In this document: positions 1 to 15,532 of the stretch, in pieces
Layout: each line of letters begins with the position of its first letter
Numbering within the stretch: position 1 is the stretch's first letter
Assembly (NCBI GenBank): GCA_038496445.1
Contig: JALMLS010000637.1
Span: 62,001-126,000 of the forward strand
Direction of reading: 5' to 3'
DNA length: 64,000 bases
From: Trichosphaerium sp. ATCC 40318
Taxonomy: Eukaryota > Protista > Tubulinea
Translations under genes and position numbers: made by a program
Notes under the pieces: generated by a model
What the model saw: only the letters and a program-made list of their open reading frames with translations
What the model was told of the DNA's origin: nothing
The model's database searches: none

Positions 1-363
1 CAGTTTAATTACATCAATGACAAACTGGAAGGTGAATACAAGCAATGGCATGACAATGGCCAACTGAGGAAGCGTTTTAATTACGTAAATGGCAAACGAG
101 AAGGAGAATGCAAACAATGGCATTTCACTGGTGAATTATATAGCCAGTTTAATTACATCAATGACAAACTGGAAGGTGAATACAAACAATGGCATCACAA
201 TGGCCAATTGTGCGTGCAGTTTAATTACATTAATGGCAAACAAGAAGGAGAATGCAATGTATGGTATGCCAATGGCCAATTGGAGAGCCAGTGTAATTAC
301 ATCAACGGTAAACAAGAAGGAGAAGGCAAACGCTGGCGTGATAATGGCCAATTAATTGTGTAA
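1..363 (+). CDS. 3' part of a MORN2/YwqK-like repeat protein (5' end outside window)
   Basis: Frame 1 from base 1 is open to TAA at 361-363 and reads QFNYINDKLEGEYKQWHDNGQLRKRFNYVNGKREGECKQWHFTGELYSQ..., five 24-aa (72-nt) units matching the MORN-variant consensus. The listed 89..355 ORF is an off-frame shadow. Confidence 0.9.
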   Translation, partial: QFNYINDKLEGEYKQWHDNGQLRKRFNYVNGKREGECKQWHFTGELYSQFNYINDKLEGEYKQWHHNGQLCVQFNYINGKQEGECNVWYANGQLESQCNYINGKQEGEGKRWRDNGQLIV

Positions 364-2400
364 CACGATGTTCATTAGTTAAGGAGTTTGATGGTGGATT
401 ACCACGTGTCATTGTTTTTTAAAGTACCACCTTTTCCAAAAATGTACAAAACTTGTTATAGCTTGGTGCTTGTACCGTGAGTTACAAATAGGTAACGAAA
501 CGAATGCCGGTTGAACAAAAATAATTCTCAAAATTTTCTTCTTTATATTTTTATGTTTTGTTGAAAGTGTACCGCCTGTTTGAATTCTAGATTTACATTT
601 TATAATAGCTGCGATTTCTTTGCAAACCCTGTCACAAAAGTCAAGGTGAAATTGTTTAACTGTTAGCCGACACGCTATTTGCATCCACACAGTTGCAAAG
701 TTCTATGAGTAGCCAGCCGTTGTGCACTAGTCTACTATTACTACATTAGTACTACGCGTATGCAATAAAGGGCCTCCTTAAAGGAGAGGTAATAACAAAG
801 TAAGAATAATCTGAGAATCAATTGTAGTTCAATGGTATTTTGGTTTTTGTTGCCTACAGGCTACAAGTCTTTTCAAAAGATAAACATAGAAACGCATTTG
901 TGCGATGACAAGAACCATTAAATTTGGGGTGTAGTGTTTGCTATCTATTAGCTAACATAACACAGGGTTGTAGCGGTGGTATTAGTAAGTTGTAGTCAAC
1001 CAAGGTTATTTGTGGCGGCTGTAGATTAAAATGGTAATGACTAGTAAAGTTGTTAGTAAACTGTTGGCGTTTAAAACCAAGCAAATATATTTTACCACCA
1101 CCGTCTTTTATTTGAAGTATGGTGTGTCCTTCGCCATTTTGCTATGAGCACACTAGGTGTATTCGCGCAACAGAAGAATTAAACATTAGGATTTTATTTT
1201 TCGTCTTCCTGCTAAAACGATATCCTTAAGTTGCTATAAACAAAATGCAGTTGGATAGCATTTGTTGAGTGGATTTACTCAATAAGCATTAAGTGATACC
1301 CTTACTACTGTTAATGTTATTACAGGCAATAGTATTGGATACATCTGAGGCACACAGTGGAGATTCACATTACGCAAAATACATTACAACAACAAACACT
1401 GTTTTGTCGTAGATTGTCTATGTAGATCTTATTGCCTACGTTTAGGCTAAACTAAGATGTGTACTATTGCTATAATGCTAAAAACTTCGCATTATTGTAT
1501 AGCAGATACGTTCTTCTCCTTTAAAAATGCTGTAAGATTGACAACTCCTTACAATTTGCAAGAACGTACCATTAATTCCAACGCGTTTCTGATTGCGATT
1601 AGGACTTGCTATAAGCACTCTAGAGTTTACAACGAGAAGTACTTCACGAAATACTACACGAAGGCACACTGAATTGTTATGATAACAATTGCGATAGAAT
1701 GTTAATGTTGGTTTTTATTTCGCTTGAACGGATCTAGGTTGTACATGGATAGCCAAACACAATCCAGTTTTTTTCCTTCTTCGACGAAAAAGCGGATACA
1801 CAATTCTGCTCTAACGTATAATAAACTAATTGAACAAGGTATATATTGGAAAGAAACGGCGAACATGTGACGCTATGCTTTTTACCCTTCTCTTAATATT
1901 AAAAATAGAATACAGCACAAAAACCGTATGGTTCGCTGTCATATTCACCCTGGCACTCACTGAAATGCACGTGACCAAGTCGTGGGCTCGAGATCTTTAG
2001 AGTTTGTTCGATATGGTACCAAATCGCAATATAACTATGTAACCTTTATTGTCTACCTGATACATACCTAAAAGGTGCCCAGTTATCCAGGGTTGTGATC
2101 TATGACACAACACAAAATAACCTCGCCTCACATTTTTACACGCTGGGTAAGTAGATTGATAGCCTCTATTTGTACAGCAGGCTCTTGTACTTTAAACTCT
2201 CTGGCTTCGGTGAATATTCCAAGCTCATTTCGTGAGCGTGTGAGCTCGAGCCAGTTAAGTCATTAAGCAATTCTCCTAAAAAAATCAAGATAATTTATAC
2301 AACTTACAACCATCATAAACACACTTCTAAGCAAGGCCCATGTGGAAACTAATATCAATTGGTGAGTGCCATCTACAACGCAATCAATTTTTTTTTCGTG

Positions 2401-4757
2401 ATGTCGCTCACGTGTTTAGTGCTATTAATGACAATGGCTGTCTATTGTACCGGACAAGATTTCGATAGTATGTACAGTTTTGAAGCCGTTACAACAGGTA
2501 CTATTGTATTCTCTTTTAATTCTCAACTGATTAATACGCAAATTGAATTGAACAACTAAACACCGTTTATATCACTAACTTGACTGTCTCTAGTGGACTT
2601 TTCACAACCCCAAAAGCGAGGTGGTATTGAACAACATGTTTTAACATTGAACAAAGCGGACGGAACCACTCTCGCATTCAATTGTGTCAAGCATTCTCCA
2701 TTCAGAGTTGGCGCTCAAGTATGTTCAATTTACCTTTTCTCGTTTTTTATTGTCAGTATGTGCAGTTGATTTATTATCTCGCTTAGATCGTTGTTGAACG
2801 CGGAAATAACAAAACATATCTCCCAGCACCAACAAACTTCTACAAAGCCATTGGAGAGAACCACTCCGATTTGGTGTTTGTCGTACATGATGACGGTACT
2901 ATTTCTGGTTTCCTTAAACTCAATGGTGAACAAGTTGCCATTGAACCTGTGTCCCAGTACGTACTTTTAATCTAATTCTTGGTCTACTATTTAACAATCT
3001 CGCTGTAGTAACAAACGATTCTTGGGCGATCATCACAAGTCAAAACTTGTACAAGCAACACACATGTTACTCAGGTTCGTTCGTTGTACTTGTTTAAGTG
3101 ACCAACAACTTATTTTCATTGCGATAGAGAAAACCGTACTGATCCTTGGGAATGTGGTGCCTGTAAAGCTCACCAAGACGCTAAACACAACAAAAGAAGA
3201 GTTCGTGCTGGTAGAACCAGAAACAAAAGGTGACTACCTAATAACAACTTCACAAATGTAACCTTTGTTTTAGATCTATAGAGCAGTTTGCTTCGGGATC
3301 AACATATCCAATACATCCAGCTCCAGTACCTTGTCCCCAAGGCAATATCAAAGAAGTCAGATTTGTACGTCTCCAACATTTCCTTTCATTTGCGTACTAA
3401 TCCTTATCCAGGTCGCTGTGGCTAATGCTGGTTTCACTTCAGAGGCAGGTAGTTACAACAACGCGGCAGGCTACATCGGAAATTGTACGTAACCTTGGCT
3501 AGGATCTCATGCGCTTAGCATATACTAATAACGTGATAGCGTTCAATGTGCTCAACAACTTCTTTCCACAAGATTTTGTACGACTCCAATAATTCTATTC
3601 TATTGCTAATGTATCTCAAGCATATCCAATTGTCCATTGATCAACTCATCGTCAGAACAACCCCAAATAGTAAGTTTTAGGACTTGTTATACTTTCCCGA
3701 TACTAACGACGTTTGTGAAGGTGCTGACTCTTGGGATGTTTATTCGAATAATTGTCCTCAAGAAATAGTAAATGATGAGTACCAAGCTCAACTGTTGCCT
3801 GCATTTGGGCTATGGAAAGCTGCCAATCATCCATCAGCAGGCGCCATCTTATTTCACGATTGTCTACGGCAAAGATCTACTGGTAGTGTAACACTTGGTA
3901 GTGCTTACACTGGAAATCTGTGCAACTCAAGAGTAAGTTGTTTTTATCAAACCTTGTTTTATCTTTTTCCAAATTCTAAATGACATTTAGTACGGTTCTG
4001 CAGAGACACAATTCCAGCACAATCAATTCACAAGACATCGCCTCATCGGCCATGAAATTGGACATCTGTTTGGATGTAATCACGATTCAGTTGGTATTAT
4101 GCTTGCTTTTGACCCAAACGAAGAGTACGCAAATTATCTGTTGTTAGAATGTCACGTGATATCTGATTTCGTTCAATAGTGATTCCAGATATGAGCGATT
4201 CTCACGTGCCAGTCAAGCTCAAGGTTGCAGCACTCTCAGTGGTAAATCATGTGTTCAAAACATGGAGAATGTGTTCCGATTGAGAACATCCAACAACGTG
4301 GATTTCGCACTTGATGGTGATAATGGTTGTGCCAACCACCAGAATGTCTACTTGTATGACTTTAATGAGAACTCTCCAAACGTGAACCAGCAATGGGTAC
4401 AGATCGATAAAGGAAACGGATACTATGCCTTCCAAAAAAGAAATACCGATTGTTGTCTTGATGGTGATTGGGGTGGTTCCAATGGACAAAACGTAAAGCT
4501 ATGGGAATGTCAAAACACGAACCAAAACCAACACTGGAAGAAGATACATCTTGGAGGTAACAAGTACCGCCTAGAGAAGCGAAATGCTGCTGGATATTCG
4601 ATAGATGCAAGCAATCTTAGAGAGAACTATGCGTACGTTTGTTCTCAACGACTCATGGTTGTAATTCTTAACCTATATTTCTAGAAATGTCTATCTATGG
4701 AGTTCTGATAACAACAATGTCAATCAGCAATGGATGTTCATACTCGATAATGATTAA
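2401..4757 (+). CDS. Secreted M12B/reprolysin-like metzincin protease with a C-terminal ricin B-type lectin domain (multi-exon)
   Basis: Signal-like N-terminus MSLTCLVLLMTMAVYCTG. Zinc motif HEIGHLFGCNHD followed by Met-turn GIM at about 4050-4101. QxW-type ricin repeats (NQQW, NQHW, NQQW) from 4262 to the stop at 4755-4757. Several GT-AG introns. Confidence 0.85.
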
Positions 4758-5224
4758 GTAGCAAACTTTATTGTGTAAATAAACCCTCTTGTTCTCAACC
4801 TATATTGTCCGTGTCATTCAAGTTTGCAACAGGTTTGGCAGAAGTATCAAAGTGTAAGATCTTGCAAGAACTAACGCTTAAATACATTCTGTGAAGCCAA
4901 GTCCGTACTTTTAAGCACTTTTAACAATCCCCAAACAACTCTCCACACAGCCAATATGAATCACGATGACCAAAATCACCTGTTGGAGATGCCAGTTGAA
5001 CTGATTGTTCATATTATGAAGTGCGGCTCTTATACACTCAAAGCAGCTCAAACGTGTCATTTCATTCATAATATTGTGCACAACCACGTCGGGTACCCCT
5101 GCATCAATATTTCACTCGAAGAAGAGTTTTCACTACTTTCTGGAAGCCCTTTGCTTGAGAATACGCCAATCTCATTACTTTTAATCCCAGAAATTGTAAA
5201 TGATGATCATTTGAAGCTACTTAA

Positions 5225-5837
5225 GGGTGGAGTCCTATAATGTCTCAATATCGATTAACCCCTCACAGATTTGGCTATAATTTACTGTGAGTACTCAGCA
5301 CGCCCAGTTATACCCTTTAGGTAGCGCTAAAAAATTTTTCCAATAAATGGAATTGCGTTTTTTACCTAAATTAAGCGACTTTTCACGCAGCTAACCCCTC
5401 TTCAATTCTGCTATAAACTTCCACAAAACACGTATTTACAGTCTTAAATGATATAGTGTGGTTTAAAAAGTTATTGCACAACACACAACATAGAATTTTG
5501 AAAAAAACATCTAAAAATAACAAATAATGTTTACGGTAAACACACAAAAAATAACACTCAAAAATTAGTTTTTTTCTCCAAAAACTGCACAGCTCATAAA
5601 ATTCATAGATGGGTGCCATGTGCCGTGATGAAATGAACATGAATAATTTTTCATACAAGTAATGAAAAAAATGGTTACTGCTTAATTTGGAAGCTATGTG
5701 AAAAAAGCACGTGTCTGTTAAATCGCGTAGGCGTTAAGGTCATACGGTTTAATGTGGTAACAAAAAATCAGGTTAAAAAAACAGTTTTTGTCAATATAGG
5801 ACTCTCAATATAGGACTCTCAATATAGGACTCCACCC
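5225..5837. mobile_element. 613-bp non-autonomous DNA transposon (MITE) with TTAA target-site duplication, Kolobok-like termini
   Basis: TTAA at 5221-5224 and 5838-5841. Perfect 15-bp terminal inverted repeats GGGTGGAGTCCTATA / TATAGGACTCCACCC. Excision restores the host reading frame. No transposase ORF. The superfamily call rests only on the TSD and RR...YY termini. Confidence 0.9.
5791..5832 (+). repeat. Three tandem copies of TCAATATAGGACTC at the right end of the MITE
   Basis: Exact 14-bp unit at 5791, 5805 and 5819, overlapping the right TIR. Confidence 0.95.
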
Positions 5838-7209
5838 TTAAAGGCGTAAAGACAATAAAGCTTTCAAAATGCAAGGACATAACAGACAAGGGCATAAAAC
5901 AACTAAAAGGTGTATATTCAATAAATTTACAGAAGACAGCAGTGAGTAATGAAGGCGTCAAGGCATTGGCTGGTGTACACACTATTAGTTTATCAGAAAC
6001 TAGAGTGGGTGATGATGGTATCTCAGCTTTGTCTGGTGTTCATAAGATATCTTTAAGTTACAACGTGATTATAACGGATGCAGGATTGAAAGCGCTTGCT
6101 GGAGTACACACCATCAACTTGAGGCATTGTACAAACATAACAGATGAAGGGTTCAAGGCGAAGGTATTAAAGCTGTGAAAGGTGTACATACCATCAACTT
6201 GAGGCGTTGTCAACATATAACTGATGAAGGGTTCAAGGCTTTATCTGGTGTTCACGTGCTTGATGTGGCAAATACAATGATTACCGATGAAGCATTAATC
6301 TCGTTAGCAGGTGTACATACTGTTACGTTATGGAATTGTGATCACATAACAGATAAAGGTATCAAAGCTTTAGCTGGAGTTCACACAATCAATCTATCAA
6401 ATACTCTTGTTACAGATGATGGTATAAAAGCTTTGGCAGGTGTTCATTTTATTGATTTAACAAGCACGAGTGTAACAGATGATGGCTTAAAGGCATTAGT
6501 AGGTGTACACACTATAATGTTATGGGATTGTAAATTTATAACAGATGAAGGTGTGAAAGCATTAGCTGGAATACATAGTATTGATTTAGCGGAGACAAGC
6601 ATAACAGACGATGCACTCAAAGGGTTAGTAAGTGCAAAGAATATTGATATCTCGTTCTGTGCATCTATAACAGATGTTGGTATTGCATCTCTTGTTAGTG
6701 TAAAGAAGCTTAGCATTGAAGGATGTGCAAATATAAATGGAGAAGGTACACTTGCGTTGGGTGCTTTGACAGAATTGCAACATAGTATAACATCTATATC
6801 AGTCATCAATACTTTGAAAAGTAAAGGTATCAAATTAAACACGGTAGAACTAGACTAAACATTCTGATACAATGGAAAGTCTAATTTTTAATTTGCTGTA
6901 ACATTGGCAAGTTCACATGGGATTGTAAATTTATAACAACAAAGGTGATGTACTATCATAAAATGAAGTAGTCCGGCAACTTTTTGTTTGGTTTGAGTTA
7001 AACGATCATTAAAGACAGCACATGTTCATAGTGTGATATGTCAAGTCGAAATTTGTCACTTCTGCACTATCAGAGCTCATGTAGTTCATATGACTCTTCA
7101 ACAGACCGTGCTTACGAGCTTGCGTTTCGCTGGATTTGCCATCACACGATTTAGTAGCGACTAAAATGACGTCTAACACTTCCCTACGCTTACCAATACC
7201 ATTTTTCCA

Positions 7210-7500
7210 TGCACACGATAACCAAACTGTTGGATGAATGTATTTGCCAATGAATTTGGTGTGAAAAGAGTACTACACAATCTCTATTATTTTTAGACAA
7301 ACATACATGACCTGCATGTTGTAATACCGGTTTAATTAACAAACCTGTTTAAGTTTACTTACAGTATTGGAACACACGTGTTACTTTTTATCTCATATTT
7401 AAGATTTTAAATGCTAGTTTGATGTATTATTACCTTTGGTTTCAATATATTGTTTGTGTAACTTGCACGTACAATCACAACAATAACACATTGTAACTTT
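7210..7500 (+). repeat. Dispersed repeat, copy A (homologous to 20680-20872 in inverted orientation)
   Basis: Shares TGTGAAAAGAGTAC, TTTAGxCAAACATACATGA and GGTTTCAATAxATTGTTTGTGTAACTTGCA blocks, in the same order, with the reverse complement of about 20700-20820. Boundaries approximate. Confidence 0.8.
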
Positions 7501-7963
7501 TTTGTTTAGTGACGTTTCAGTTTGTAAACACGTGTTCTTCCTGTTGCACTGTTTTCACTTCTAAAACTGCAACATGTTTACCGTAAAAGCCAAATATACA
7601 GTTTTGTCTTACCATCGATAACTTCTTGTCAAAAACGTGAACACGACTTGGTTTTCGGGTGAGCCCTCCTGGATCGTTTAAAATATACAAACCAATTATG
7701 TACGTGTGAAAAATCCTTTGACGATAATCTGAGGTACAAGGAAGGATACGCCAGTGATTCAAGGATGCTGTACTACAAACGAGATGAATAAAAATAATGC
7801 TCTTACATTTTTATTAACGCAGAACAATGGTAACGTTTGCTCGAATACAACATTTCTATTTAGGTGCATGATTCACTATTACGTTCAAAATTTGGGCCAT
7901 TATTTGCGTTCTCACAGTCATACCACTGTACTTGCCACTTACCATTTTATAACACCGTGAATA

Positions 7964-8905
7964 CTATTTCATTGTTTCCTTAATGTGCGTTTCTTTTTCC
8001 AACTCTGTTGTAATCCTTCTACCATTAACATAGTTTTCAAGGTATTGTAACTGCCCATTCTTATACCAAGCCTTGCTCTTGCCTTCTTTTTCATCATTCA
8101 AGTAATGATCAAGCGTCCACAAATTACCATTACTGTGCCATCTCCTATCTTCTCCTTCAAGACAACCGCCTATGTAGTAACACTGCCTTTCCAGGTATCC
8201 ATTCTCATGCCAACTTGTGTACACTCCTTCTTGAAAGTCACTAGCATATGTTTCCTTGATATGCACTTGTCCATCCCAATACCAGTGCATGTGTTCTCCT
8301 TCACGTTCTCCATTTTTAAAATTACCCCGAGACAATAGTTGACCATGGCAGTACCATGTTTTGTACTCTCCGTCTAGTTTATCGTTGAAGTATTTGCCTT
8401 CTACACGTAACTTACCATTGTCATACCACTCTTTATTCGCTCCTTCTTGTTTATCGTTTACATAGTTGCACTGAATCCATAACCGTCCGTTCTCATGCCA
8501 CTTCTTGTACTCTCCTTCCCTTTTATTGTCGATATAATTTGCTTGCTCAAACATTTGACCGCTATAGTGCCAGCTGGTACGCTCTCCATAAAGCTTGCCT
8601 GTCAGCCAATACTCTCGACATAGTAATTGTGATTTATTTGGATCATTTGCTTGGTACTTTTTTTTCAGCCATTTACCGTTTTTGTTAAAGTCAGCATCAA
8701 ATCTCGTTGTTGTTGCTGTGTATCTTGATAATAAAGGCCATTTTAGATAGATATCAAAATCTAGGTCTATAATATCAAGGTGCAGCTCAAAAGGAAGGTT
8801 TAGTAGACTGTGACGCGCTTGTTCTCTGGTATTAAACTAAATTGTTAGTTTTGTGACATAGATTTTTTTGCTGTTTGGCGCTCTTACTTGGCGTTTCGCT
8901 TTCAT
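7964..8905 (-). CDS. F-box-like plus MORN2/YwqK-repeat protein (one intron)
   Basis: ATG at 8905 (MKAKRQ), GT-AG intron 8887-8837, then exon 2 in frame with the 7964..8554 ORF. Contains the LLNLPFELHLDIIDL F-box-like motif and about 8 repeats of the type EGEYKxWxxNGxL. Confidence 0.85.
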
Positions 8906-9112
8906 TTGGTTCAATTCGGCTTTAATATCTTCAATCGCAATCTTGTGTTATGTGTACGTGTTTAAAACTGTTTGCTAAGACAGTTGTTGAAGAAAACACG
9001 CGATTTGGTCAAACTTTTTCTGTCCTTATTTTCGGCTGGGCTTGCTGTTAGTCTGAAGAGGTTAATATTAGAAAACTATTCAGCAAGGCAAAATCATTGC
9101 AAGAAACACTTA

Positions 9113-12100
9113 ATGATTGATTTTGAAGGCAGAAATAGCACTCACTTAAGTATTTAAGGCACTCGTTGAACCATAAATAGTGTTTACAACTCTGTTCGCA
9201 CCTCTTCCTTCTATATCCCTTGGGTAATAAAGACCGTTACTAACCTTATTTGTACGTCGATTCGGAGCATCGCCTTGTGAGTCTTATCTACATGATTGAT
9301 TTACACTTCTAGTCTTTCAAAAAAGGGAATACGCAACTAATGCTAAAAGGTGTGTAGTGGAATACGTAAAATTTTACCACCAGGGATTTCTAAGCCATTT
9401 CTCAAGAGCAGTTACCCTTACGATATCTAACATGCTTTAGGATTTCAATCAGAGACCATAAAAAGATTGACAAATGATCAAGTTATTTTATGGACACGTG
9501 CACATTCTGCCGTCCTTAGTGTCAACCAAGACGTGGAAGAACTACGTAAAAAACTTGATAAAATGTTAGTGTGTCATGTTGTCAAGTCAGAGCTCCACTA
9601 CGAAACATACGTCGAGCTGCTAACTACTTTTCAACAAAACATGAAGGCGTTGACACCAACAGAAAGAAAACTAAGTGTATCAAAATTATACAAGACTCCC
9701 ATCATGGGTCTTTACTATGGTTGTGGTACGTCATACTGAAATGAGCACAGTTCAGTACTATATGTTTTTGCTTAATAAAGTAGGCAAGTCAACGTTTATA
9801 TATCGTATGCACAGCACAATGCTCTCCGCAAAGTTTCAAGACTACGTTGAGACCCATTGCACTGATGAAATGTTAAACTACGTGAAGAAAATCGTTCAAG
9901 CAGACTATGTTTATTTTGACGCAACTGAAACTAAACCTGGGTTCTTGAATACATTTGATAAAGAACAGGTCAATAACTGTCTTGTGGAAGATTTTGTAGA
10001 GAGGATCAATACGTCACGTGGGATACGTAGGTTCTATTTTCTTTCTTTAACTTCTAATGCCTTAAAGAAATTGAAACAAAAGAAACAGGATGTGAAAAAA
10101 CAATGTCGTTGGAGGGCGTGATAAAAGGTTATGATGAACAACTGTCAAAACAGGGTCTTTATCATCCATTGGTTATTTTTGTTACTCGTATAAGCCCAAA
10201 TAATAGATTTTACGAAGAAAATGTACTTCCAAATAGTTTAACATTCATCTCACTAGAAGTAGGACAAAGTATATCAGGAGTGGCTGCTGTGGTTTTGGAA
10301 AACCTTGTACAATTGTGTGAGAATAATAACAAAGAGGGAGGTTCATTTCTTGATGGCTGGCCATAATCCGATATTCGCGGATATTGGTCATAGTGATGGG
10401 ACAAAGTCAGGCTGTTTAGAACAGCTACCAGTGACGAATATTGCTCCGTTACTACTAAAGGTACATCCACTTCTGCAGTTAGGTTCCTAATATAGTTGTA
10501 AGTCATTTACAAAGGAGCTTATGATAGATATTATCAACACAGCTGAAGATAGATACAAGCAATATCTTCAGTTTGAAAGTGAAGATCTCAAAGAGATGTT
10601 TGCAAAGAGTTTGGTGGACCACTATGCAGGACACCCTAAGTATATACAAGTTATATTCGAGTAAGTTGTCAGTGTTTTATGTTGTTAACAATATGTTAAG
10701 CAAACTGTTGAAAAAAGCAAGGCAGCATTATGACAAACAGTGCGTTGTTATTTACAACAATAAGTGATATTTGTCTAACTCTTCAATGAAGTAACAAGGA
10801 TCTAATGGTTAAAAGACCATGCTTAGAAAGGTAAGAATAGTTTTATGTTGGTCTTAACTTAACGATTAGAATGTTGGAACTGGAACAAACCTTTGCTGTG
10901 CAAAATGCAATGAGGATCAGTGAAATATGCAAAATACTAGACCACAGAATGTTTGAGTCTGAAGGATTTGATAACGTATATCTAACCTTTGTCAAAATAG
11001 CAGTAGTAGCATATCATAATCTTCCAATTGCTAAGGGAGACAATTTTGTATCAGCATTGAAACAGCGATTTACTATTAATGCTGATTTGGGTGAGCAATC
11101 ACAAGTCACTCTTCAGAAATTGCTTTCTGTAGTACCTATGATGATAGAAGAGAAGAAAGTGGATAACATTACCTACTATTACCCAAAGCTACCAACGCCT
11201 ATTCTAGTTTATATTCGCAACAATTGTATTGACGACGAGTTGAAAGAAGCAATGAACTTTGACAAACATTCTTACAAAGGTACGTAATTCCTAATATTCG
11301 CTTTGTAGTAATTTGGATTTAAGGGCAATTGCTTGAATACGTGGTGAAAGACAAACTACTGAGTAACTCACAACAGCCCCTATATACAGTGGTACCTTCA
11401 CTACGTAGTGTAGCCAACTTTGGTGTAAGTCAAAGCGTAATCATAACCTACTGTTCTAATTGTATAAAATAGGGAGTCATCTTGCCTGAGGGGTGCCGTC
11501 CTTTTCCTAAAGTAACAAACAATGGAATAGAAGTACCACATTCTATAACAGCCCCAGAATCAATTGAAGTGAATACAATAAAACCTATATGTTTCCAACA
11601 AATTTGGAACTCACACAAAGTAGATTGTTTTTTGAACCCTCGCACTAAGTCTGGTATTAGCGCAAAGTTTTATTGATGATAACTAATACTAAGATGTTAC
11701 ATAGAGTCAATGGATTTCTACCTGAAAGGAAGAGTAATGCACCAGGATGAATTCAAACAATGCAATATTGGCTTCAAAATGAATGTACGAGTGTATTGTT
11801 ATTATACTCCTAAGCAGTATCAAGGCAGAGGAAAGTGGACTTAGTTTTTCACAACTTGGAGCTGCTATTGAAAAGTTTCATGTGGGATTGGACCCATTGC
11901 TAATTAGTGTATGTGCAATAGTGTCAATATCTTTGAGCGATCATTTAAAAAAATGCTTCGGTAATAAGACAATAATTCTCCAATGTAAGTTTGTTTATCT
12001 TCAATTGTCCTTGGTACTTAGTTTCTTGTTATAGCTGGTGTTTATTACAAACTGAAAAAAGGGGCTCTGTATAACTCAGTGAGAAACATCGTAGTTGTAA

Positions 12101-15100
12101 ACGGTGAAAAGGTACTTGTGTTCTTGTTTTTTTCTTGCGATTGTGATTCAACTCTTTAAATAGATCCAACTAGAGGATGTAACAGAAACTACACATGAAA
12201 ATGTTGAATGTTTTACAATTGGCGACAAACTAGTGTATGCGCATAATCCAATGAACGTACAAACGCTCCTGAAATTGGCTACACAAAAAACCCCTAAAGA
12301 GTATCCTTGCTTGGAAAAGATTACAATTCAAGATACAACAAGCACGGATGGCACAAAAACTGTGTACAGCCACGAAAGGGAACATTTGGAAGTAAAAAAA
12401 GACTTGCAACTATGCATTTTTTGTTCTGAAGATGTAGCACGTTTGTGTGGCTCCAAACAGAATCTGAAGGTGAGCATATTTGGAGATAGTAAAAATACAC
12501 AAGGATGTGGCCTGGCTGAAGGACAAGCAATAATGAATAGTACGTGATAGCTTTTGGTTATGCTTTTTCTAATTGTTGTCAGGCTGTCTGTACCAATTGA
12601 TGAATGTACCACATAGATACAAGATTATTTACTTGGAATACAATGGCTGTAGAAAGAAATTAACCATAACTAGAAAAGAATTCAGTAATATATATGCTGA
12701 TGGTACAGCATCAACAACTGTTATTGAACTTACAAATTTACTAGCATGTGAATTATTTGGACTCGGAATAGTTCAAATAGACTTCAAAAGTGATTCCAAG
12801 TTGTTTCTGATAAAGTATAGCCAATATATACACAAAGCAACTTACACTGTTGTCAAAACCTTTAACTTGTATACAAAGAATATTCATGTAATCTACCGTG
12901 ACGTAAAAAAAAGCATACCTATTGATTCATCTAATGCACCACGCAGTGCAGGTAACTTCAATAGTTTAGTTCCTTTCTGACCTTACATGTAGTTTCTAAG
13001 ATATTTGGTTTGGATAGCAATGCAAGGTTGAAGAAAGACAGCATTCACGGTATAGATGTTAGGATGTTCGAACAATTTGTGGATGGCGAAACATACTGGC
13101 TTGATGCTGGAATCAAGCGCATTACTGTAGTATTCAGAGCCGTAACTAAAAGTGTAGATGTTATGCGTACAGACAGAGTGATTAACAAAGGCAAGTGATA
13201 GTACTTGTGCGTTCGATTTCAGTGCTTACAATATACAGTCTCAGAAGCATTTGCATTGACAACACAAATATTTACTCTTAGAGACGAAAGTGGTACATCA
13301 ATTGTGTACTACGATCAGGTGGTGGATGGAAACAGTTACTTTATTGATGGAATCAAACTTATTACTGTAAGATACAGAGACATAACCAAAACTGTAGAAA
13401 TTCTGCAAAGAAGTAAATGGCTTGATAAAGGTAAGTAGTAGCTTTGTAGTCTGTTTAATTTACCCATACAATACAGTCTCGAAAGAGTTTAGGTTGACAT
13501 CAAGCAATTTCACTCTACTGGACAATAACGGTGATGCCATCGTCTATTATGACGAAGTGGAAGATGGCAAAACGTACTTGCTTAACGATGGTATCAAACG
13601 CATTACTGTAAAATACAGAGGCATGACTAAGGCTGTAGAAATTGTACGAACAGGTAAAATACTTGACAAAGGTATGTAATAGCAGTTGCAGTTGTACTCT
13701 GTTTACCGGTGCTTACTTTAAAATGCAGTTTCTGAAGAGTTTGGGTTGACAATAAATACTTTCACTCTTAGAGACGGGAAAGGCTGCCCCCTTTCATACA
13801 ATGATTACGATAGTATTATTGAGTACCAAACATACTGGCTTGATGATGGCATCAAGCGCATTACAATTAAATACCAAGGAGTAGACAAAAGTATTGACTT
13901 TCAATCCAATATAACAGCTGCTAAAAAAGGTATGAAAAAGGATAGTTTTACTTGTATCAGGACTTACTTTGCATACAGTTTCTGAACATTTTGGGTTGAG
14001 TAAGAATACATTTACTCTTCTAGACAATAACGGTGTATCTATCGTACACTATTACGATGAAGTAGAAGATGGCAAAACGTACTTTCTTGACGATGGAATC
14101 AAATTCCTTAAGATTACCTACAGAGACGAAACAACAACTTTAACAATTGGACGAACAGATAAATTGCTTGACAAAGGTATGTGATAGCAGTTGTACTCTG
14201 TTTATTTACCAGTGCTTACTTTATAATACAGTCTCTGAAGAGTTTGGGTTGACACTGAACACTTTCACTCTTAAAGACAACAGTGACTCACCGCTTTTAT
14301 ACTATGATGACATTATAGATGACCAAACATATTGGCTTGATGATGGCATCAAGCACATTACAATTAAATACAGAGATATAACCAAAGCTGTAGATGTTAG
14401 GCGAACAGATAAATTGCTTGACAAAGGTATGTATAGTGTTGCAGTTGCACATTTCGAGTTACTTACTTTACAATACAGTTTCTGAAGAGTTTGAGTTGAC
14501 AATAAATACTTTCACTCTTCTAGACAGTAACGGCGCATCAATTGTACACTACGATATGTTAGAGGATGGCAATATTTACTCTGTTGATGATGGAATCAAA
14601 CGCATTACAATTAACTACAGAGGCGTTGCTAAGGTTTTAAATGTTGTGCGAACAGATAGCTTGCCTGAAAAAGGCATGGATAGCTTTCCTCTTTTTATTT
14701 CGAGTTACTTACGTTACAATACAGTTTCTAAAGAGTTTGGGTTGACAAACACCTGCAGCCTTTGGGACAACGGTCGTAAGCCCATTGTACACTACGATGA
14801 GTTAGAGGATGGCAATAGTTACTTTGTTGATGATGGAATCAAGCAGATTACGATTAAGTGCAGAGACATAACCAAAACTTTAGATGTTGTGGATGACGTA
14901 ATGTTGCTCGAAAAATGTATTTCTTAATCTTTTATTTCCACTTCCTTATTGTAAGCTACAGGTTCTACAGAGTTCGGATTGACCAAAAATACTTTCAATC
15001 TTCAAGACAGAACTGGTGAAACAAAGAAGCTCCCTTTCTTGTTGGCACCTGGACAAACTTACTGGCTTGATAGTGGGACAAAAACAATTGAAGTAACTTA

Positions 15101-15532
15101 CTTTACTCGCAATAATCACGACATTGTACATAAGTTTGATGTAAGGTCGTCTCCCAGTTTGATGCAGCAAGGTAACCTTACATGTATTAGTTTTCTGCTA
15201 ATCAACGATTACTAGTTGCAAGTAAATTTAATATAAAGCATTTTTTTATAATCAAAGATAGAAATGGCAAAGTAATTGAGACCTATAAGCATGTATTTCA
15301 CGGTAGAAAATACCATATTGGCCAAGCTAACCGCAAACGAGATGTGTCGCAACTTGATAGTAACCAAAGTGAGCACTCCAACAAGAAACAGCGTACAGAA
15401 AAAGCACATAGTGCTGATATCAGAAAGGCAGAAGAATCTCCACACAGGTCCTCCTTTATGGCTCCCTTTGTCCAAGAGGACAATAATGAACATGATGCTG
15501 AAATGACAGAAGCATCATCTCAGCAACAATGA
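9113..15532 (+). CDS. Crinkler/RHS-like (CR) protein: P-loop NTPase, PD-(D/E)xK REase-like domain and C-terminal array of about 11 ubiquitin-like repeats (start uncertain; coding clear from about 9441)
   Basis: Spliced Walker A region PIMGLYYGC|GKSTF, then PLVIFVTR at the Walker B position, FLMAGHNP and AGHPKY (GxP). REase-like stretch KG|QLLEYVV...NPRTKS|ESMDFYL...IGFKMN|AEES...AIEKF. Followed by tandem repeats and a low-complexity tail ending at TGA 15530-15532. Confidence 0.65.
12993..15330 (+). repeat. Tandem array of exon+intron cassettes encoding beta-grasp (ubiquitin/PB1/CIDE-N-like) units
   Basis: Nine internal exons (12993-13190, 13239-13430, 13477-13671, 13729-13929, 13979-14176, 14232-14426, 14479-14673, 14725-14916, 14962-15171) of 192-210 nt, all multiples of 3 and all flanked by phase-1 introns. 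Consensus IKRITVKYRxxTKxVxV...DK|VSEEFGLTxNTFTLxDxxG...DGxTYxLDDG. Confidence 0.9.

Follow-up and report, generated by a model that had tools for sequence, protein, structure and literature searches.

A tandem array of phase-1 exon-plus-intron units encoding a predicted ubiquitin-like repeat tail in the amoeba Trichosphaerium

Apolipoprotein(a) kringle IV-2, nebulin and filamin are well-known examples of proteins enlarged by the tandem duplication of exons, with or without their introns. Here we describe an array of this type at the 3' end of a gene of the amoeba Trichosphaerium sp. ATCC 40318, found in a 64,000-nucleotide (nt) stretch of its genome (GenBank assembly GCA_038496445.1, contig JALMLS010000637.1, positions 62,001 to 126,000, forward strand; hereafter the window, whose own numbering from 1 is used throughout). 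As in arrays of the kringle IV-2, nebulin and filamin type, the repeated DNA unit includes an intron, the internal exons are of equal phase and of lengths divisible by three (3n), exon borders need not match domain borders, and copy number would change through unequal crossing-over. The amoeba array differs from that type in its 41- to 57-nt introns, in a predicted beta-grasp domain that is cut within its helix, and in that no copy-number polymorphism is known for it. To our knowledge, such arrays have seldom been described in protists, and this one offers a clear case in which duplication of exon plus intron has produced a row of domains that do not coincide with the exons encoding them.

Polyubiquitin genes likewise encode head-to-tail ubiquitin-fold units without spacers. 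Their repeats are, however, near-identical and cleaved at Gly-Gly, whereas the amoeba units are 30-60% identical in amino acid sequence, lack Gly-Gly, stand at the C terminus of a large protein and are each interrupted by an intron. With Patthy-type class 1-1 modules the amoeba exons share flanking introns of the same phase, but their borders fall in a helix rather than at module borders, and the unit was not found in unrelated genes, either in its own genome or among 1.84 billion representatives. PMC3632108 treats phase-symmetric exons as the usual signature of exon duplication and shuffling.

Layout of the array and its introns

The array is best read, and in our view probably correctly, as the 3' portion of one long gene (about 9.1-15.5 kb of the window, + strand) encoding eleven tandem ubiquitin-like (Ubl) domains; the window has a GC content of about 36%, and its introns are short. 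An earlier note on this DNA had described nine consecutive exons of 3n length separated by phase-1 introns at one position, and we reproduced both lengths and coordinates exactly. The nine exons, all on the + strand, measure 198, 192, 195, 201, 198, 195, 195, 192 and 210 nt and lie, in that order, at 12993-13190 (exon 1), 13239-13430, 13477-13671, 13729-13929 (exon 4, a mosaic), 13979-14176, 14232-14426 (exon 6, the nearest to the unit consensus), 14479-14673, 14725-14916 and 14962-15171 (exon 9, the most divergent unit). Every intron is in phase 1: exons open with codon bases 2 and 3 and close with codon base 1, exon 1 and its successors thus being symmetric 1-1 exons, and the junction reads K/V-S in the majority of units (here and below, a slash in a motif marks the splice point).

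A 41-nt GT-AG intron in phase 1 (12952-12992) precedes exon 1, and introns 1 to 8 follow at 13191-13238 (48 nt, GC-AG, with a GCAAGT donor), 13431-13476 (46 nt), 13672-13728 (57 nt), 13930-13978 (49 nt), 14177-14231 (55 nt), 14427-14478 (52 nt), 14674-14724 (51 nt, in frame and stop-free, with the weak GC donor GCATGG) and 14917-14961 (45 nt). The last homologous intron, 44 nt long and again in phase 1, occupies 15172-15215 by a frame check, which moves its end back by one base from the 15216 given previously. The last exon (15216-15532) matches the unit profile at positions 9-35 and would encode the C-half of Ubl domain 10, beyond which about 70 residues form a charged tail that includes a basic KKQR cluster; translation stops at 15530-15532.

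Judged from the sequence, the array probably exceeds the nine exons and comprises ten symmetric exons, eleven introns and eleven domains. Our reading of open reading frames (ORFs) and splice sites places an exon 0a at 12583-12702 (+ strand), which would encode a linker and the N-half (β1-β2 and the helix start) of Ubl domain 0; it opens in phase 1 after an acceptor ending at 12582 and matches unit-profile positions 40-58 weakly. A candidate eleventh homologous intron (12703-12744, + strand, 42 nt, phase 1, GTACAG...CTTAC...TAG) comes next. Its acceptor lies exactly 11 nt upstream of TTT GGA CTC (F-G-L), as in every unit and paralog, and its donor, G/GTAC after the first codon base, matches paralog donors. 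If this intron is spliced out, the 207 nt at 12745-12951 become a tenth symmetric exon (0b), divergent in sequence and predicted to combine the C-half of domain 0 with the N-half of domain 1. Exon 0b matches the unit profile at positions 13-58 (E 2e-5) and also aligns with other exons; counting it, internal exons are in phase 1-1 in 10 of 10 cases. Because the candidate intron is 3n and has no in-frame stop, an ORF reading cannot separate its splicing from the presence of 14 extra residues. The intron just upstream of the array (12540-12582, 43 nt, GTACGT...CAG) is also in phase 1 and does not lie at the homologous helix position, and the block before it (12164-12539) may contain one further, very divergent Ubl-like unit.

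The array has a tandem period of 247 nt over 13962-14889 (Tandem Repeats Finder), and its central introns are 74-88% identical to one another, compared to 41 ± 14% for shuffled introns. Introns 3 and 5 in particular share 82-88% identity, and whereas exon-exon DNA identity is 57-75%, intron identity is equal or higher. The period and the homology of the introns together indicate that the duplicated unit is exon plus intron, in agreement with what had been suggested before.

The introns, of 41-57 nt and the form G[TC]...AG, consist mostly of splice signals; their 5' sites are strong, their CTTAC branch and ACAATACAG acceptor regions are conserved, and their size suggests splicing by intron definition. 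Between 12952 and 15216 seven introns are GT-AG, and GC donors occur in 2 of the 11 (13191, GCAAGT; 14674, GCATGG), and the one at 13191 is identical in an allelic contig (C430, described below) and is therefore not a sequencing error. Nine of the 11 introns carry an in-frame stop no more than 4 codons past the donor, the stop-free introns being only the candidate at 12703-12744 and intron 7, through which an ORF (14394-14927) reads. By our estimate, about 1.2 of 11 introns of such size would be both 3n and stop-free by chance (1/3 x ~0.3-0.36 each), so that two open introns are no excess.

Fold and sequence relatives of the repeat

The intron site lies within T-D-K-L-L-D-K/V-S-E-E-F-G-L, the counterpart of the α1 helix of ubiquitin. 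We made AlphaFold2 (AF2) models of two natural, contiguous, stop-free stretches, unspliced and with no exons joined. The first (window:12585-12950) covers an N-half, the helix, a C-half and the next N-half and has a predicted local distance difference test score (pLDDT) of 60.8. In this model, the segment of residues 10-96 superposes on ubiquitin as a whole (1-75), on the BAG6 Ubl, on the ELMO RBD and on DCX with Z 8.0-8.5 (VIA-align) and a root-mean-square deviation (rmsd) of 2.0-2.7 Å over 67-76 residues; its Foldseek matches are nearly all Ubl, SUMO, NEDD8 or PB1 domains, and the top ones are without exception Ubl, SUMO or PB1. Residues 35-44, cited here as evidence on the candidate intron, have a pLDDT below 50. 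The second model (window:14589-14915) starts in the 3' part of exon 7, reads through the open intron 7 into exon 8 and has a pLDDT of 68.2, with 4 of 5 models in agreement. Residues 1-84 of this model, which combine the 3' part of exon 7 with the 5' part of exon 8, superpose on the ELMO RBD, DCX, ISG15 and ubiquitin with Z 7.4-8.2 and rmsd 1.9-2.6 Å, and the beta-grasp forms even though the intron-coded residues 26-42 are disordered (pLDDT below 50). Overall, the superpositions of both models span 65-76 residues, at a structure-based identity of 4-21%.

In both models, one exon supplies β1-β2 from its 3' part, the next supplies the helix end and β3-β5 from its 5' part, and the hairpin that follows stays outside the beta-grasp. 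From these modest-confidence models we infer that the repeat is a ubiquitin-like beta-grasp that spans the intron site, in which case each exon carries the C-half of one domain together with the N-half of the following one. The same split in mid-helix had been put forward from the sequence, and the two models place the domain accordingly. Adjacent domains would be joined, from β5 to the β1 of the next, by a two-residue 'DG' turn: a unit ends in ..L-D-D-G and is directly followed by the I-K-R-I-T of its neighbor, with Gly-Gly absent.

The predicted β-β-α-β-β-(3-10)-β topology, with whole-domain superposition at Z 7.4-8.5, is shared with ubiquitin, ISG15, SUMO, the ELMO RBD, DCX and PB1. Unlike those families, the amoeba units have no match to a Pfam Ubl family or to PDB sequences, lack the C-terminal Gly-Gly and are fused through their 'DG' turns. 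Pfam searches with each exon, with exon 0 and with one natural read-through domain returned no family (E <= 1, apart from unrelated noise); no profile match to the units came from the curated Pfam Ubl families (ubiquitin, Rad60-SLD, DCX, PB1, RA, UBX and others); and the unit profile found nothing relevant among PDB sequences. A profile of the nine exons, searched against the 1.84 billion representatives, drew only bacterial proteins rich in Big_3 (bacterial Ig-like group 3) domains, with E down to 3e-19, and no true homologues of the unit were found there. The Big_3 matches are stacked local matches of 8-16 bits, nearly all to one hairpin (profile positions 37-60, G-x-K-x-I-T-V-x-Y), and reach significance only because the targets carry many repeats. 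Exon 7 alone aligns with Big_3 (PF07523) over exon positions 2-55 and model positions 12-66 of 68 (E 0.12), at 13.1 bits, under the Pfam cutoff of 21.2. Big_3 and the amoeba unit thus have in common a hairpin motif, G-x-K-x-I-T-V-x-Y-x-x-x-T-x-x-x-x-V, and a repeat of about 65-70 residues, but the match is local and sub-threshold, and the amoeba fold is predicted to be a beta-grasp with a helix rather than an all-beta sandwich. We rejected homology to bacterial Big_3 on the grounds that the local matches are almost all confined to the hairpin, and treat the likeness as convergence. On these results the array defines a lineage-restricted ubiquitin-fold repeat without detectable sequence relatives.

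Upstream in the gene, Pfam searches of the ORF blocks gave no match, and a block with a possible P-loop was poorly recognized in an ESM Atlas look-up. Two short proteins made of near-identical 55-residue repeats (P0006 and P0025; ..V-E-F-S-L-S-N-L-L-K-L-L-D-S-N-R-Q-P-V-Y-Y-Y-N-E-H-G..) match unit-profile positions 3-26, the start of the C-half, which may be a chance match or a distant relationship.

Divergence, alleles and paralogs

Synonymous divergence (dS) between units 2-8 ranges from 0.45 to 2.9, indicating that the duplications are old and that the units are not being homogenised; in DNA the units are 25-43% diverged. The ratio of nonsynonymous to synonymous divergence (dN/dS) is 0.11-0.77 in pairwise comparisons, 0.43 when pooled and 0.21-0.34 in the strand regions, which places the beta-strand core under purifying selection. 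Along the units, only the eight codons before the donor exceed 1 (dN/dS 1.27). We did not count that value as positive selection, as it depends on low dS and on the aberrant unit 4. With no homologues found in other species, site-wise tests of selection have little power. The proportion of synonymous differences (pS) is 0.30-0.36 near splice sites, compared to 0.5-0.69 elsewhere, a pattern that constraint on exon ends by splicing signals would produce.

Exon 4 is a mosaic. Its likeness to exon 6, at 80-95%, runs through intron 3 and the 5' two thirds of the exon (the C-half and the first part of the N-half). Past about 13884 the exon resembles no other unit, which puts the breakpoint inside the exon and not in an intron. 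A two-unit super-repeat, considered for the similarities of units 3, 5 and 7 and of units 4 and 6, was rejected, since the identity tracks are better explained by shared blocks of constraint plus one mosaic exon.

An allelic comparison is provided by contig C430, a 99% haplotig of window positions 1-13883. Of the 58 sites at which the two copies disagree between 9000 and 13883, only 2 fall within 12000-13750: a synonymous change in an exon and an indel in an intron. By these counts polymorphism is lower in the array than in the gene's 5' half. Divergence drops from about 1.3% in 9000-12000 to almost nil over the final 1.8 kb ahead of the breakpoint, a near-identity that could stem from recent conversion, from loss of heterozygosity or from strong constraint. 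C430 lacks one T at 13852, which shifts the frame, and it departs from the window at 13883, inside exon 4, to continue as a 99.8% copy of another contig, C88. The junction (G000:C430:15047-15056, G000:C88:14892) has an overlap of about 10 nt and lies a few bases from the point at which exon 4 ceases to resemble the other units, and may reflect either a chimera of the assembly or a true rearrangement in one haplotype. The haplotype comparison suggested earlier found units 1-4 almost identical, and it ends where C430 leaves the array, within exon 4.

Elsewhere in this genome the unit recurs at seven or more loci, on contigs C98, C103, C45 (four copies) and C132, with 3-5 detected units each. These loci have upstream sequence in common with the window gene, which identifies them as paralogs of the whole gene, and in this genome the unit is confined to such paralogs. 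Each paralog unit has its acceptor, in phase 1, exactly 11 nt ahead of F-G-[LV] and its donor at G/GTA after ..E or ..D; an intron at the identical base and phase in all paralogs implies that the intron predates the family. In a tree of 30 units with Shimodaira-Hasegawa-like approximate likelihood ratio test (SH-aLRT) support, units of the C45 and C132 paralogs (five paralogs) cluster strictly by position (SH-aLRT 98-100), and window units 4 and 6, 7 and 8, and 3 and 5 cluster within their gene. The within-gene clustering indicates that the window array was enlarged in situ, the paralog arrays having been inherited as fixed blocks. The C45 copies and the window gene share the 5' motif Y-Y-P-K-L-P and an intron placed at the same base and in the same phase of their Ubl units, whereas the window gene has about twice the units (eleven domains) through in-gene expansion of units 2-8. 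In all family members (window 15340-15532 and the last exons of L022, L023 and L026) the last Ubl half gives way to a charged tail, in which a basic cluster (KKQR, KKRK, KKAR or KRRK) resembles a putative nuclear localization signal.

Origin of the array and alternative readings

We think it likely that the array is an ordinary product of tandem duplication that encodes a fixed, constitutively spliced poly-Ubl tail. The ancestral domain of the family would already have had a phase-1 intron inside its α1 helix, and the array would have grown as a unit of about 247 bp, comprising one exon and one intron, was duplicated in tandem and in register through replication slippage or unequal crossing-over. 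In-frame duplication of a unit with one intron leaves internal exons that join a C-half to an N-half, are 3n in length and have phase 1-1. Such symmetry is automatic after duplication, so that equal phase and 3n length are not independent coincidences; on this reading they are a by-product of the array's origin rather than a device, and need no selection for shuffling. The tail might act as a stalk or spacer, or as a multivalent protein-binding module, on a large protein, and copy number would shift only over evolutionary time, as between the ten symmetric exons here and the 3-5 detected units of the paralogs.

Several observations weigh against this interpretation. Both AF2 models are of modest confidence, with Z values of about 8 near the level that the alignment tool calls a 'common arrangement', and the folds come from unspliced stretches rather than from a spliced domain. 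That the array is most likely spliced constitutively is read from its splice signals, and the two GC donors and two in-frame stop-free introns leave scope for alternative products. The allelic comparison covers units 1-4 only, since C430 exits the array in exon 4, and exon 4 itself indicates that some recombination or conversion between units has occurred.

The earlier note had seen in the array a built-in diversification mechanism, based on exon skipping or unequal crossing-over within introns. If skipping were regulated, or crossing-over frequent, variable numbers of Ubl domains and chimeric domains would result. Its arithmetic holds: every exon is 3n and in phase 1-1, so any skip or in-register crossover stays in frame and yields a chimeric domain, and the halves are homologous enough (30-60% amino acid identity) that chimeras could fold. 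Unit number does vary between paralogs (3-5 against 10), exon 4 joins a unit-6-like 5' part to an unrelated 3' part, there are two GC donors and two frame-preserving introns, and the helix-flanking segment has a dN/dS near 1. However, the symmetry follows from tandem duplication without selection, and units that are 25-43% diverged in DNA (dS 0.45-2.9) are not those of an array in which inter-unit recombination is frequent. With a pooled dN/dS of 0.43, positional orthology of units kept in five paralogs, a haplotig that is all but identical across units 1-4, where polymorphism is lower than in the 5' part of the gene, and an exon 4 breakpoint within an exon and not an intron, such a mechanism lacks support, and we regard it as very improbable. 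The splicing evidence points the same way, the splice and branch sites being strong and conserved and the 41- to 57-nt introns suggesting intron definition; outside animals, according to PMC6142364, exon skipping is rare and intron retention predominates. We rate the capacity for frame-keeping chimeras as a latent property of the array, not as a demonstrated mechanism. Retention itself is a somewhat stronger candidate, although still doubtful: the introns at 12703-12744 and 14674-14724 might optionally be kept, adding a loop of 14 or 17 residues to the helix region of domains 0 and 8. Neither intron shifts the frame or contains a stop, the donor of intron 7 is a weak GC one, the 12703-12744 intron encodes a plausible amphipathic helix, and AF2 models that include the intron-coded residues still give a beta-grasp with a disordered insert; two such introns are, however, no excess over the 1.2 or so expected by chance among 11.

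A different division of the array would make each exon a structural unit, that is, a five-stranded beta module distantly like Big_3, with the helix as an inter-module linker and the introns between modules, the arrangement known from classical exon shuffling. The Big_3-rich proteins drawn by the nine-exon profile (E to 3e-19), the match of exon 7 alone (E 0.12) and the mere two residues between β5 and the next β1 would fit such modules. We nevertheless consider this unlikely, as the matches are almost all hairpin-confined, of 8-16 bits and inflated by repeats, the Pfam score of 13.1 bits falls short of the 21.2 cutoff, and both AF2 models build a beta-grasp over the intron site with the next hairpin outside. 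Very improbable, in our assessment, is a combinatorial use of the array, by skipping, retention or both, to give varied Ubl numbers and chimeras in a possible conflict or defence family. If true, combinatorial splicing here would bear on cassette-type protein diversification outside animals; on present evidence, the fixed poly-Ubl tail looks like an ordinary by-product of repeat evolution.

Outside the array, C430 and the window differ by two larger indel polymorphisms or mobile pieces: at the place of window 8671-8686, C430 is longer by about 820 bases, and some 610 bases of window 5224-5837 are missing from it. The upstream neighbor of the gene, on the - strand at 7964-8554, is a 196-residue ORF of MORN_2 repeats (PF07661, E 1e-22).

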